Translations under genes and position numbers: made by a program
In this document: piece by piece, positions 1,604 to 43,249 of the stretch
How positions within the stretch are numbered: the first letter of the stretch is position 1
Layout of the letters: every line of letters begins with the position of its first letter
Notes under the pieces: model-generated
What the model saw: the letters and a program-made list of their open reading frames with translations, nothing else
Told to the model about the DNA's origin: nothing
Database searches by the model: none
Source of the DNA: Macrostomum lignano
Lineage: Eukaryota
Reading direction: 5' to 3'
DNA length: 64,000 nucleotides
NCBI GenBank assembly: GCA_002269645.1
Contig: NIVC01001658.1
Location: 1-64,000 of the forward strand

Positions 1604-2728
1604 TCAAGACAACGGAAATCCCTGCACGTCAACCAGCTCCTGAGCGAATTCCAGCTGTTGCAGCAGAGCTTCCACATCCTGACACGCAGACAGAGAAGCA
1701 GCCGCCTTCTCTAGCAGCGCCATCCAGTACAGCTGGTACTCATTCTCCTTGGAAGAGCACTTGTGCAGTAGGTCGGCCGACAGGGCGCCCGGTCTCAGTC
1801 CGACCGCCGCCATCGCCTGCTTGGACCGTTTGCCCGACGAGTACAGCCGCTTGCTGAGGTCGATTCGTCGAACCGAGTCAGTGAGCCGACGCAGGTGACG
1901 AATAACGGCGAGTTTTTGCATGGCCAGGGCCGGCTCCTCAGTCTGCTGTAGGTCGCGCATTCGTTGGCTGAGACTTTTGAAACAATTGACCATCACGAAC
2001 TGCTTGCTGACCTCCCACTGCTTGGCCAAGCCTTTGCCAGCAGCTGTTTCGGCTTTGGCGGCGGTGAAGGCGCTGGCTCCGCCGGTCAGAATGGCTTCGG
2101 CAGTATCCTCCTGGGACTGGGACGCCGACTTGCTGCTGCCCTGCAAACCCTGCTGAATGGCTGCATCAATGTGAGGCTGCTGGTGCTGGCTGTGGCCCTT
2201 CCGGCGCCGAGACCTGCAGGCCAGGGCAGCGGTGGATGTCGCCGGCTGCTGGTGATGCGCGCTCTTGGCGCAGAACATCAGCATCTGGTCGATGAGTGAC
2301 GAGTGCGGAGCCAGAGAAGTTGAATTGGCGTCGCCTAAGCCAGTCTGAGCGTCTTCTTCGTCAGCCACCGAGAAGGTATTCGTGTTGACGTCCTCGTTGG
2401 TGTCCTTAATGATATTACCGTCGGCCGATTGCAGGGGGTTCTTTTCGGCAGTGTGTTCAATGACGTCTCCGCCGGCCACTGCGCCGCCCTGATGGCGTCG
2501 TCGATGAGACGAGGAGCCGTGCCGCTGGGCCCGGCAGGCGTCGCGCTGATGATGCTGATGGTGGTGATGATGATGATGCTTCGAGTGATGCACCGACGAT
2601 CTTCTCGTAGCGTTGTCGCCAATGGAGTTGGAGCAGGATTGCTCGGGCTGCTGCTGATGGTGCTTTTGATGCCGATGCTGGCGCGAGCGACCAGGCTGTA
2701 CCTGCTGCGAATCAATTGATCTGATCAT
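1604..2728 (-). CDS. Intronless ~374-aa protein: His/Gln-rich low-complexity N-terminus, C-terminal ~100 aa resembling a death domain (candidate adaptor)
   Basis: Open frame from ATG 2728 (the ORF-track start at 2734 is TTG) to stop 1604. TATATAAA lies ~56 nt upstream on the minus strand. The C-terminus LSKRLYSS..KQAMAAVGL..ADLLHKCSSKENEYQLYWMALL..VEALLQQLE aligns by eye with the death-like domain of the neighbouring gene ([48 protein letters not shown]). Confidence 0.65.
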   Translation of the reverse strand: MIRSIDSQQVQPGRSRQHRHQKHHQQQPEQSCSNSIGDNATRRSSVHHSKHHHHHHHQHHQRDACRAQRHGSSSHRRRHQGGAVAGGDVIEHTAEKNPLQSADGNIIKDTNEDVNTNTFSVADEEDAQTGLGDANSTSLAPHSSLIDQMLMFCAKSAHHQQPATSTAALACRSRRRKGHSQHQQPHIDAAIQQGLQGSSKSASQSQEDTAEAILTGGASAFTAAKAETAAGKGLAKQWEVSKQFVMVNCFKSLSQRMRDLQQTEEPALAMQKLAVIRHLRRLTDSVRRIDLSKRLYSSGKRSKQAMAAVGLRPGALSADLLHKCSSKENEYQLYWMALLEKAAASLSACQDVEALLQQLEFAQELVDVQGFPLS

Positions 2729-2783
2729 TTTCAAAGTCTTCAGTTTTTTCCTGATTTGAAAAGCGCTGCAGCGGAGCAGGCAA

Positions 2784-2791
2784 TTTATATA
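2784..2791 (-). promoter_or_regulatory. TATA box candidate for the 1604-2728 gene
   Basis: tttatata on + reads TATATAAA on -, 56 nt upstream of ATG 2728. Confidence 0.5.
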
Positions 2792-40100: not shown

Positions 40101-43100
40101 GCTACACTTCAGCCGTCAAACTTGCATCGAGACTCGCGTGTTACACCTATGCCAGCAAAACTTTAAGAACGGAGATGGGATGCAGCCCCGGACAGACGAG
40201 CTGTTTCCTGGCTGAATTCAGTAGCGGGGTAATTCAAGGCCTACTAATCGCTGTTTCATTGTAGTAGATAAAGCTGTATTGATAACTTTATTAATTTCCA
40301 AGCAATTTTACCTTACAAATCTTTCCAGTCTGTCTCAGGTGGTTGCGGAGACTGCTCCCGTAGTAAGACTTTTGCTAATGGTATGAGACAGTCTGTCAAT
40401 TGCAGCACCTGTACCACAGACAAGTGCAATACGTTTTCGTCAACATCTGGAGCTGGTAAGTAGCTCGTAGTACCTAACTGCTTTTGGTATGCTATTTTAG
40501 AAAAGAGATGATAAAGTAATTAAAGATAGTTTGAGCCATAGACAACATGCACATTTTTACTGAGAGACCCGCGACTGAAAGACAACAATTTTCAAGCCTG
40601 CATACGATTGGGCATCAAAGTTGAGAGTCTATGATTGAATACCTCACGGAGCATCTTCGGTTGAATGTAGCAGTTGTTGATCTAGAAATTAGCAAAAGAA
40701 GTCACTAGTGCAGACTGATGTTTATCGAATCGTTTGAAATATATAGGAAAGGACATCCTTGTGTTCTAGAGTCCTAGAGATGTGCTAGATTAGAGTTCTC
40801 AGTGGAGTTTCTCAGTTAGAAATGTGCCTGCTAGGGTGCAACCCTTTGGTTATCTGTTTTCTTAATTAGCACAACGGAAGCAATACTCCTTCTTTAACTC
40901 TTTCTTTAAGCCGATTAACTGGCATAAAAGTCTATTAATTGCCTCCCACGTTCTTGTAACGGTCATTATCATGTACTATAAAAACACGTTTTCAGCCGCA
41001 GCTGGCCCAGCACCTGTACTGACATGCTATGCACACTCAAACACTGCCGCAAAAATCGAACAGAGCTGTCCTGGATTCAATAAGTGCTATTTGGCTATTT
41101 ACGGTAGTGGGGTGAGTCGACGCACAGATTTCAACGCGCATTGTTATTTAAACAGAAAGTCAGTTGTTCGATGTGTTTGATTTTTTTTCAGGCGGAATCG
41201 GGTAATTGCGGAGACTGCTCCCTGATCGAGTCTGCAGCTAAACTTACAGGACAAACAGTCAAATGTAGCACCTGCAGCACAGACAAGTGTAATGCGGGCT
41301 CGTCTACAGGTGCCATCGGTGCCGGCGGTGAGTGCCAATATACGATAATTTTTTAACTAGCTATGGGAATGGAGACAATTATCCTATATACGTCTAGAAC
41401 CATTTCCTAGGCGCACTTATCTCGGTTTTAAAGATTCCTTAGCATGAAAACACGCATATACCTACCGACAGACCATTTTTAGTACATGGAAGTTGGGCCT
41501 ACGAGCTAAACTTTCTTGCCTTCTCACTGCCTTTGATTTGCGGTAGTGCAGAGTGCTCACCTACAAACTAAAATATTTCCTGTGGATAAAAAAACAACAG
41601 TTTCAGGGCCTGGAAGTGCATCGGCCCTCACGTGCTACTTATTTGACTACAAAAGCAACGGACAACCCACTGAGCAGAAATGTTTTACAGGTCGAGAGTG
41701 TATGACGGTTTTCCATGATAAAAAAGTAAGTCAGCCTAAGTCTTCAAGGAATGAATAAAGATACTTCAAGTTAATTTTCGTTTGATTCTTTGCTATTATA
41801 GGCCATGTCGGGTGCTTGCGGAGACTGCTCGATTATCAATAGTGCAGTCAAGAAGATGGCGGTAAATTCGATAACATGCACAACCTGCAGCAAAGACAAG
41901 TGCAACTCAGGCTGGTCGAATAGCGGAGCTGGTGGTGAGCTTATCAGACGTTCGGGTGACATGTTCAACCTTTTTTTCAAGAATAGTTGGTAAAAACAAA
42001 CAATACGTGCATGAATTGCAGGATGCACCAGGGGCTTTAGCACTAGGGGCCTTAGCACCAGGGGCTTTAGCACCAGGGGCTTTAGCACCAGGGGCTTTAG
42101 CACCAGGGGCTTTAGCACCAGGGGCTTTAGCACCAGGGGCGCCAGCACCAGGGGCTTTAGCACCAGGGGCTTTAGCACCAGGGGCTTTAGCACCAGGGGC
42201 TTTAGCACCAGGGGCTTTAGCACCAGGGGCTTTAGCACCAGGGGCTTTAGCACCAGGGGCTTTAGCACCAGGGGCTTTAGCACCAGGGGCGCCAGCACCA
42301 GGGGCTTTAGCACCAGGGGCTTTAGCACCAGGGGCTTTAGCACCAGGGGCTTTAGCACCAGGGGCTTTAGCACCAGGGGCTTTAGCACCAGGGGCTTTAG
42401 CACCAGGGGCTTTAGCACCAGGGGCTTTAGCACCAGGGGCTTTAGCACCAGGGGCTTTAGCACCAGGGGCTTTAGCACCAAGGGCACCAGCAGCAACAGT
42501 CGTTAGCAGCGACAAAGCTACAAAAGGAGGGCAACGTATTCCTTTAGCAAATTCATTGCTCTCACCTCGCGATTCAGCCCCTTCGCTTTAGGTTTTTGAG
42601 CACTAAATATTGCTTAGTGTTAATTCGATGCGTATTTACATTTTAGTGTCTGCATCGGCTCCAGGATTCAAGTGCTACGTGTTTAACAACGGCAGTGGGA
42701 AAATGACTGTTAAATGCAGTTCGCCTCTAAGCTGCCTGCTTTCCAAATATAATAATGGGAACGGTAATGTAAGTCACAAATGTCCTGTCGGAGTATTGTG
42801 ATTTCTACAAGTAAAAAATCAACTTCAACTCCCTTTAAGCTTGTGCTTGATAGTTGGATGGAAGTTTTCGTATGATTCCATCATTGAGGGCCATTCCCCA
42901 AATGCACAGAGGGTACGTCACAGCCTGACGATTAGAAAGCCAGGGCCGCTGTACACCTGTGTGAGCGTGTCTATGAGTGTCTCATTTATTAGCAACATGA
43001 ATGTCTTTGCAGATTTTTGAAGGCAGATGTGGAGACTGCGCCGCGATAAACGCCATGGGCAAGATAACAGGAGTGAAAGTCGAGTGTCACAGCTGCAAAA

Positions 43101-43249
43101 CTGACCTGTGCAACTCTGTTGAAGAATTCAAGAGAATCAGCAGTGCCAAGTCTGATGAGCAAAGCAGCGCTTCCTCGGTACAATACGGCAATATTGAAGC
43201 CATTGGCATAAATGTATTTTTGACTGTAGCTGTATTTGCTTATGCTTGA
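31189..43249 (+). CDS. Secreted/GPI-anchored protein with 12 tandem Cys-rich Ly6/uPAR three-finger-like modules (1006 aa, 25 exons)
   Basis: Signal exon 31189-31249, then A/B exon pairs: 31779-31882/31977-32106; 32898-32995/33097-33223; 34124-34218/34296-34425; 34579-34700/34786-34924; 35455-35552/35650-35779; 36674-36783/36875-36992; 37690-37787/38780-38909; 39635-39741/39828-39939; 40113-40228/40329-40455; 40996-41111/41192-41327; 41601-41725/41802-41934; 42647-42768/43013-43249. Each A exon is phase 1-0 with usually 3 Cys. Each B exon is phase 0-1 with CGxC..CxxC...C(N). Total 3021 nt, ending in a Ser-rich spacer and a hydrophobic tail ([15 protein letters not shown]). Confidence 0.85.
32640..32735. 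repeat. Short 21 bp tandem repeat (gcctgcggcgccaaaatgagt)
   Basis: About 4 copies in a Ly6-gene intron. Confidence 0.75.
37075..37560. repeat. 14 bp minisatellite (cagtgaccaagaga)
   Basis: Period 14, intronic between modules 6 and 7. Confidence 0.95.
37860..38345. other. GC-rich insertion of unknown class in the module-7 intron (probable mobile-element fragment)
   Basis: Abrupt GC rise inside an AT-rich intron, which makes this A-B intron ~1 kb versus ~80-250 nt in the other modules. No diagnostic motif or TSD found. Confidence 0.35.
42025..42490. repeat. 15 bp minisatellite (caccaggggctttag)
   Basis: About 30 copies; same unit as 24140-24650. Confidence 0.95.

Follow-up and report, generated by a model that had tools for sequence, protein, structure and literature searches.

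A gene joining two kinase domains to a predicted death domain, its kinase paralogues and a neighbouring Ly6/uPAR array in Macrostomum lignano

Results

Genes at the locus

We analysed the genes in a 64,000-nucleotide stretch of flatworm DNA (the window hereafter), which comprises bases 1-64000 of Macrostomum lignano contig NIVC01001658.1 (assembly GCA_002269645.1), has ~40% GC and contains introns of the GT-AG type. The principal element is gene 2, which codes for two kinase domains followed by a predicted death domain (DD) and lies in a cluster of related kinase units; a gene for an array of Ly6/uPAR (LU) modules lies 4.7 kb downstream of this cluster. No description of these genes was found in the literature searched. 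An initial annotation had proposed that four adjacent genes, possibly with the array as their surface partner, make up a single signalling module, and its coordinates are accurate, as the first open reading frame (ORF) has its stop at 1604 and the array gene at 43249. The features are as follows.

6423..14976 (-): gene 2, kinase-kinase-DD (GenBank RNA-seq-based coding sequence (CDS) and canonical splice model)
12589..14958 (-): kinase domain B, N-terminal unit of gene 2 (Pfam E 3e-18)
8831..12511 (-): kinase domain C, second unit of gene 2 (Pfam E 8e-22)
6423..6860 (-): predicted death domain DD1, final gene 2 exon with its stop codon (AlphaFold2 and Foldseek)
15683..18769 (-): gene 3, kinase A, transcribed pseudogene (five-exon model, in-frame TAG)
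23602..26467 (+): gene 4, degenerate pseudokinase followed by DD2 (six-exon model, hhalign to the kinase family)
~26022-26467 (+): predicted death domain DD2 (similarity to DD1)
1604..2728 (-): 'adaptor' ORF, 374 codons (open frame)
31189..43249 (+): Ly6 array gene (PAA65389.1, 1006 amino acids (aa); 25-exon model)

The GenBank annotation of GCA_002269645.1 was derived from RNA-seq transcript assemblies cut at trans-splice and poly(A) sites (PMC5730564). Because the sequenced line, DV1, carries extra large chromosomes, many of its regions are present in several copies at least 95% identical to each other (PMC5730564). We found the locus in three genome copies (contigs NIVC01001658, NIVC01003518 and NIVC01000345), which are ~98% identical. 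All tests of selection given below (the ratio of nonsynonymous to synonymous divergence, dN/dS) are comparisons between these copies, which are recent duplicates at ~2% divergence; non-coding DNA differs between them by 1.98%, and the neutral rate was taken as 0.020. Protein searches covered sets of 5.8 billion and 1.84 billion proteins, and death folds and three-finger folds were assessed with AlphaFold2 models that were then compared with PDB structures by Foldseek.

A tandem-kinase gene under purifying selection

The exons of gene 2 in our splice model are:

14898-14958, 14450-14558, 13775-13949, 13528-13686, 12589-13086, 12439-12511 (-): exons 1-6
12223-12340, 11377-11554, 10224-10388, 8831-9409, 7667-7744, 6423-6860 (-): exons 7-12

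All splice junctions between these 12 exons are canonical and the reading frame is intact. GenBank represents the gene as a single CDS (14976->6423; 894 aa; 5'-partial) with two Pkinase matches; our model has 875 codons from the ATG at 14958, upstream of which GenBank adds 6 codons. Kinase domain B is joined to kinase domain C by an intron of 77 nucleotides (nt), which runs from GTGAGT to TTTTACAG in phase 0, and C is joined to the DD exon across an intron region containing two minisatellites and one extra 78-nt exon. The linker between domain C and the death domain is ~130 residues long, and on inspection it lacks the RHIM core (IQIG/VQVG), holding only 'VSIG'.

Domains B and C are recent paralogues (47% identical). 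As judged from the alignment, domain C has the full set of catalytic residues including DFG; domain B has the beta3 Lys, the alphaC Glu, HRD and DFG, and a Ser in place of the catalytic-loop Asn (HRDLSVDS). Comparison of gene 2 with its second genome copy revealed 14 synonymous and 7 nonsynonymous changes, corresponding to a dN/dS of 0.144 (binomial p=2e-5), with values of 0.15 (p=0.003) for domain B and 0.08 (p=7e-4) for domain C. The DD1 exon had no changes in 435 nt, where ~8.6 would be expected at 1.98% neutral divergence (Poisson p ~2e-4). Gene 2 is, thus, intact, transcribed and under purifying selection. The kinase-kinase-DD protein proposed initially is borne out as the product of one gene by the canonical splicing and the RNA-seq-based CDS, and the RIPK1-like order, in which a death domain stands C-terminal to a kinase, is real, transcribed and selected in this gene.

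Nearly every intron of gene 2 contains its own minisatellite (6889-7648, 7944-8793, 9436-10142, 10443-11334, 11678-12162 and 13162-13423; periods of 18, 27, 31, 16, 33 and 35 nt). In UniRef entry A0A1I8JDI5 (902 aa), which comes from an earlier assembly, portions of the A, B and C kinases are fused to DD1 as one protein.

The kinase family of the cluster

An all-versus-all comparison of open frames revealed four paralogous kinase units, of which A, B and C are on the minus strand and the fourth, weaker and degenerate, is on the plus strand in gene 4. The exons of A, B and C are mutually 39-64% identical, and each of these units matches Pfam Pkinase/PK_Tyr_Ser-Thr with E values of 1e-16 to 1e-22 (60-80 bits against cut-offs of 23-32); the gene 2 protein, with its two kinases, reaches E 7e-44 and 150 bits over two stretches. 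Pfam finds no match in gene 4, the C-lobe of which aligned to the profile of the kinase family with hhalign (probability 96%, E 1.6e-9). Four intron positions (phases 1, 2, 0 and 0) are common to all four units, and this identity of position argues that they originated by local duplication. The private kinase subtype that the initial annotation assigned to these genes, therefore, stands in so far as there are four paralogous units, but the fourth is linked to the others by hhalign only.

Among the 5.8 billion proteins, the one close relative of these kinases was another M. lignano protein (P0001; 43% identity), in which a kinase of this type is joined to ankyrin repeats, and the next matches were generic kinases at E>1e-7. 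Since this paralogue, encoded elsewhere in the genome, carries ankyrin repeats, the family appears to pair one kinase type with different interaction modules. The catalytic motifs are preserved among B, C and the distant P0001 at 42-47% identity. From these sequence comparisons the kinase family appears to be lineage-specific and private to Macrostomum, and the earlier claim of lineage specificity holds in both protein sets, where the only relatives were from M. lignano.

The kinase domains could not be placed in the RIPK or IRAK class. A search of PDB sequences with the family profile singled out no group: PLK4, FGFR, SYK, MLKL, plant receptor kinases, RIPK2 and JAK2 all matched at E 1e-12 to 1e-15, and PLK4 (4e-15), FGFR3/4, SYK, MLKL, SOBIR1 and FERONIA scored as well as or better than RIPK2 (1e-12). 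The catalytic loop of the family, HRDL[A/S]VDN, contains neither the Lys of Ser/Thr kinases nor the Arg of Tyr kinases.

Predicted death domains

With Pfam Death (PF00531), DD1 scored below the cut-off (E 0.0055; 17.3 bits against 22.6) and DD2 gave no match. The AlphaFold2 model of DD1 (predicted local distance difference test score, pLDDT, of 78.5) is a bundle of 6-7 helices. Death domains make up 23 of its first 24 PDB matches in Foldseek, the top 21 being at probability 0.9-1.0, with template-modelling (TM) scores of up to 0.73. These matches include FADD, RIPK1, TNFR1, RAIDD, ankyrin and Pelle/Tube, and CARD and DED structures rank lower. As modelled, DD1 has the features of a genuine death domain, and DD2, which is 30-32% identical to DD1 (E 5e-9), would be a death domain by this homology (32% identity). 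The C-terminal domains had been expected to model as death folds, which is what we find for DD1 directly and for DD2 via homology, but not for the ORF at 1604-2728 (see below).

DD1 alone as a query found no relatives in the large protein search, and an exhaustive search with a profile of DD1 and DD2 returned only the proteins of the locus itself and two spurious repeat or coiled-coil proteins. A 344-aa protein (P0011) consists of seven tandem 49-residue units, each with MSEQMDLLQRSY, a match to the DxVDLLxRSY motif at the start of both death domains. Strand-prone segments rich in Val, Ile, Ser and Thr lie just upstream of both DDs, at ~6810-6850 (-) and ~26070-26100 (+, GLTISISSIAS); their position is comparable to that of the RHIM of RIPK1, but the RHIM glutamine is absent.

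Decay of kinase A and of the pseudokinase gene

The exon models of the other two kinase genes are:

18700-18769, 18473-18596, 18212-18386, 17605-17760, 15683-16495 (-): gene 3, five exons
23602-23668, 23788-23869, 23959-24103, 24847-25008, 25103-25892, 26022 (or 26043)-26467 (+): gene 4, six exons

In kinase A, encoded by gene 3, an in-frame TAG interrupts the coding sequence at 18332-18334, and HLD stands where HRD would be expected. The corresponding GenBank protein (PAA65387.1; 341 aa) begins at the first Met past this TAG and matches exons 3-5 exactly. The second copy of kinase A has GAG at the TAG codon, but has TAA at codon 37 (AAA in the window), and dN/dS between the two copies is 0.71, not significantly different from 1. 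Since the two copies carry different nonsense codons and dN/dS is not distinguishable from 1, kinase A is a transcribed pseudogene and does not qualify as the working kinase component for which it had been taken. Copies of a dispersed ~250-bp repeat are found at 14114-14359, 17898-18200, 21607-21943, 48013-48343 and 61175-61534, and one of them adjoins a kinase A exon.

Read from the ATG at 23602, gene 4 runs for 556-563 codons without a stop. Its kinase unit has lost the G-loop and has DGE for HRD and LAT for DFG. A strong donor (GTAAGA at 25893) could splice this unit to DD2, and such a pseudokinase-to-DD splice looks plausible from the sequence; the transcript-based CDS of gene 4 in GenBank (404 aa) ends at 25903, without the DD. 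Comparison with the third copy, which has gaps of 1 nt (in an A-run) and 3 nt, gave 5.5 synonymous and 26.5 nonsynonymous changes, i.e. a dN/dS of 1.45, with a dN (0.021) that equals the neutral rate. The second copy is broken within the DD2 exon, where position 26139 borders directly on unrelated GC-rich DNA of at least 10 kb, and only a 108-aa DD fragment is annotated there. Gene 4, therefore, looks like a decaying paralogue that drifts neutrally; positive selection is conceivable, but nothing in these sequences requires it. Thus, of the proposed pseudokinase-DD protein, the degenerate kinase unit and DD2 do exist, but its dN/dS, the break in another copy and a GenBank CDS without the DD speak against a conserved gene.

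The DNA that abuts position 26139 is one of several copy-specific insertions and occupies positions 1-9998 of the compared locus L001 (at least 10 kb; 54-61% GC). A 15-nt repeat unit, GCACCAGGGGCTTTA, fills both an intron of gene 4 (24131-24647) and an intron of the array gene (42025-42485).

The 'adaptor' ORF

The ORF at 1604-2728, which the initial annotation took for a death-domain adaptor, has 426 codons from stop to stop, 56% GC, a His/Gln-rich composition and a helical C-terminus. It has no Pfam match, Death included, and no tblastn similarity to the DDs; hhalign against the DD profile gave a probability of 0.2%, and a MAFFT alignment was likewise negative. No homologue was found in the large protein search, in which a chimeric query of its C-terminus with the array retrieved only the array's own GenBank protein, and phmmer found no PDB sequence match. 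In an AlphaFold2 model, the C-terminal 143 residues formed three long helices (~30-40 residues) and two short ones with a pLDDT of 60-76, which is weak evidence, as the segment was modelled in an artificial chimera with LU module 10 and without alignment depth. Foldseek found no death-domain match for this half of the chimera, and the matches attributable to it were coiled-coil proteins with probabilities of no more than 0.14. We rejected the ORF as a death domain on the combined results of Pfam, tblastn, MAFFT, hhalign, phmmer, and AlphaFold2 with Foldseek. The adaptor claim finds no death fold by sequence, profile or structure and is not supported, the structural part of this negative result being only moderately strong. 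A transposon origin was also considered, and no other copy of the ORF was found in the window or in the other loci compared.

Fragments resembling a retrotransposon reverse transcriptase, which are GC-rich, occur at 22538-22939 (-), with a YADD motif, and at 3300-4400. The latter fragment has overlapping ORFs on both strands and adjoins the 'adaptor' ORF.

The Ly6/uPAR array gene

The exons of the array gene in our model are arranged as follows.

31189-31249 (+): signal-peptide exon (25-exon model)
31779, 32898, 34124, 34579, 35455, 36674, 37690, 39635, 40113, 40996, 41601, 42647 (+): starts of the 12 LU modules, two exons each
43013-43249 (+): last exon, with a tail of the glycosylphosphatidylinositol (GPI) type (25-exon model)

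The gene has 25 exons, namely a signal-peptide exon and twelve two-exon modules, and its product is 100% identical to PAA65389.1 apart from two acceptor shifts of 6 nt. The 12 introns within modules are all in phase 0, and the 11 between modules all in phase 1. The published plan of LU genes comprises a signal-peptide exon, two exons per LU domain and phase-1 flanking introns (PMC6600238; PMC4839075), and the exons and phases of the array match this plan (PMC6600238). The aligned Cys number 8 in eleven modules and 7 in module 3; the ending C-x4-C-N is found in ten of the 12, and modules 3 and 8 end in CA and CG, respectively. The published LU consensus has 10 Cys, and 8-Cys variants are known (PMC6600238).

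The whole array protein has no Pfam match, and the best scores of single modules fall below the cut-offs (UPAR_LY6, 18.2 against 24.8; CD59, 21.7 against 33.9; Toxin_cobra-type, 18.7 against 25.3); DUF753 is matched weakly by 7 of the 12. The AlphaFold2 model of module 10, made with the twelve modules as the alignment, has a pLDDT of 90-96, and its top 34 Foldseek matches were without exception snake three-finger toxins, uPAR, CD59 or Prod1, with target-normalised TM scores of 0.6-0.75 for single-domain targets. A zinc ribbon, to which sequence matches to eS27 pointed, is excluded by this confident three-finger model and by the signal peptide. The initial call of twelve Ly6 modules is, thus, confirmed by the fold, the gene plan and the Cys signature.

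The C-terminus has small residues, a spacer, a hydrophobic tail and a stop, which suggests a surface protein with a GPI-type anchor. All 95 array Cys are preserved in the three genome copies, and comparison with the third copy gave 16 synonymous and 16 nonsynonymous changes (dN/dS 0.28, p=4.5e-4). The array was built by repeated internal duplication of a standard two-exon LU unit and is an independent, conserved gene. Its proposed partnership with the kinases is unsupported: it came from adjacency alone, which is seen only among recent duplicates of one chromosome region.

A second copy of the signal-peptide exon, at 29095-29155 (+) and with a GT donor after it, precedes the exon in use (31189) by 2.1 kb; it might serve as an alternative first exon or have been left behind by a duplication. 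The compared locus L003 has two insertions of its own in this region, one of ~6 kb (17600-23565) inside an array intron (window 37845-37856) and the other of ~7.7 kb (29515-37237) just past the array (window 43852). The UniRef name of the array, 'Variant-specific surface protein', is misleading.

Discussion

We favour, with moderate confidence, the explanation that the locus holds a Macrostomum-private kinase family in birth and death, with one functional tandem-kinase DD gene and no multi-gene pathway. Local duplication would have given the four kinase units, of which B and C would have fused in one transcribed gene ending in DD1; kinase A would then have gained its nonsense codons, and the pseudokinase-DD would have lost its catalytic motifs and begun to drift neutrally. 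The domains, fold, motifs, transcription and selective constraint of gene 2 come from the analyses above; for the mechanism we draw on its architecture and on RIPK1, DAPK, IRAK and Pelle. By analogy with these, the death domain may join a homotypic assembly with another death-domain protein, and such assembly might cluster the kinase domains. Domain B is probably weak or regulatory, because its catalytic-loop Asn is missing, and domain C could phosphorylate in trans with B as its regulatory partner, as in JAK-type or plant tandem kinases. Candidate partners for the death domain would be the flatworm tumour necrosis factor (TNF) receptors; these may carry death domains (PMC7519573), which makes a search for a partner worthwhile.

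Several observations weigh against this explanation. Of the 894 GenBank residues, 13-14 have no place in our exon model of gene 2. The second copy of the gene lacks 1 nt close to the end of domain C, and its product is thereby truncated before the DD (672-aa GenBank model); this could be either a genuine loss or a fault of the assembly. The selection tests use very recent duplicates and, hence, small counts. The unusual catalytic loop means that kinase activity is not assured. Flatworms lack FADD and CRADD (PMC11463336), so that the usual death-domain partners are missing.

Among known systems, RIPK1 resembles gene 2 in that a long linker separates an N-terminal kinase from a C-terminal DD, and the DD of RIPK1 is the second-best structural match to DD1 (target-normalised TM 0.68). 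Gene 2, however, has two kinase domains and no RHIM, and its kinases are no nearer to RIPKs than to PLK4, FGFR, SYK and plant receptor kinases; the resemblance probably arose by independent domain shuffling. IRAK4 and Pelle are also kinases activated by DD assembly, and Pelle/Tube and IRAK4 are among the structural matches of DD1, but their DD is N-terminal instead of C-terminal and the IRAK4 match is weak (probability 0.30). In the JAK JH2-JH1 pair and in plant tandem kinase-pseudokinase immune proteins, two kinase folds lie in one chain and the first is without a catalytic residue. Gene 2 shares this arrangement, with a first kinase fold short of a catalytic residue, but those proteins have no death domain, and the gene 2 domains are recent paralogues, B being only presumed to have a regulatory role. 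DAPK1 is a calmodulin-regulated CAMK with a ROC-COR region; gene 2 differs from it in kinase class, and no calmodulin-regulated or ROC-COR regions were seen in gene 2. The two are alike in having an N-terminal kinase and a C-terminal DD, and the ankyrin repeats that DAPK1 has in the same protein (PMC2199731) are found here in the paralogue P0001.

The array resembles multi-LU proteins in its signal-peptide exon, two exons per LU, phase-1 flanks, GPI-type tail and three-finger fold. It differs in having 12 domains, 8 rather than 10 Cys and CxxC where a CC pair is usual, and no sequence relative outside M. lignano was found in the large protein search. Proteins with several LU domains are known (three in uPAR, four in mouse Cd177 and 2-44 in predicted Drosophila proteins; PMC4839075, PMC6600238), and a 12-LU array is, therefore, not a new kind.

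Other explanations have to be weighed against the one we favour. It is unlikely, but deserves serious attention, that gene 2 is functional with a DD role outside immunity and cell death, serving as a scaffold or in localisation as in ankyrins, UNC5 and NF-kB p100, with the kinase acting in development or the cytoskeleton. The DDs of ankyrin-G, ankyrin-1, p84 and NF-kB p100 have Foldseek scores similar to those of FADD and RIPK1, ankyrin repeats occur in a paralogue, neither RIPK nor IRAK is close to the kinase domain, and FADD and CRADD are absent from flatworms; the best-known proteins with the kinase-then-DD order, however, are RIPK1 and DAPK, which function in cell death and inflammation (PMC2199731). 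The module of the initial annotation, in which the four genes and the Ly6 array would form one lineage-specific signalling system of adaptor, scaffold, kinase, regulator and surface partner, we consider improbable. It does account for the physical clustering; the homologous DD1 and DD2 might in principle bind to one another, transcripts of both gene 4 and kinase A are still made (their GenBank models being RNA-seq based), and gene 4 is open for ~560 codons in this copy. But of the four genes gene 2 alone looks functional: nonsense codons arose independently in two copies of kinase A, gene 4 changes at the neutral rate and an insertion breaks it in another copy, and the 'adaptor' is without a death fold. 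Furthermore, no part of a GPI-anchored protein extends into the cytoplasm, where it could touch a kinase, and the linkage is documented only among ~98% identical duplicates. The rapid evolution invoked for this module is seen in the decaying copies, but not in gene 2 or the array, which are conserved.

Kinase B and kinase C-DD could, instead, be separate proteins released from one precursor transcript by spliced-leader trans-splicing, with no tandem protein in vivo. If the 77-nt intron were retained, an in-frame ATG at ~12553 would lie ~20 nt past the stop ending B, and multi-gene precursors account for ~7% of M. lignano transcripts (PMC5730564). The annotation pipeline, however, cuts at trans-splice sites and yet reports one 894-aa CDS with two kinase matches, and the intron has strong splice sites at both ends and is in phase 0; we consider this version quite improbable. 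Still more doubtful is a scenario in which the tandem-kinase DD protein replaces the lost FADD and CRADD and couples TNF-receptor DDs to a kinase, the pseudokinase-DD acts as a decoy and the 12-LU protein is made in the same cells. It is barely credible that the entire kinase/DD cluster, together with gene 2, has no function and is what a recent expansion of the family left behind. Decay is clear in two of the four units, the databases have the family from one species only and the second copy of gene 2 is frameshifted; set against this are the constraint on gene 2, a DD exon with zero changes, ~875 codons in 12 exons without a defect, and motifs kept in B, C and P0001 despite their divergence.

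If signalling through the DD proves true, a flatworm lineage without FADD and CRADD would have assembled death-fold kinase signalling on its own. The idea is directly testable, as M. lignano is a regeneration model amenable to transgenesis and RNA interference. On a small scale, the cluster also illustrates gene birth and death cleanly, with one constrained gene and two paralogues at different stages of decay, which the three DV1 genome copies make readable. For annotation, it is instructive that the array was misnamed in UniRef, that one public model fuses three kinase genes and that the DDs are invisible to standard profile searches.

Other features of the window

Downstream of the array, GenBank annotates a 1249-aa product starting at 44646 (44646-53249+, plus strand), which has no Pfam matches. 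Further downstream lies a Glu/Ala/Arg-rich ORF of 372 codons (57296-58414, plus strand).

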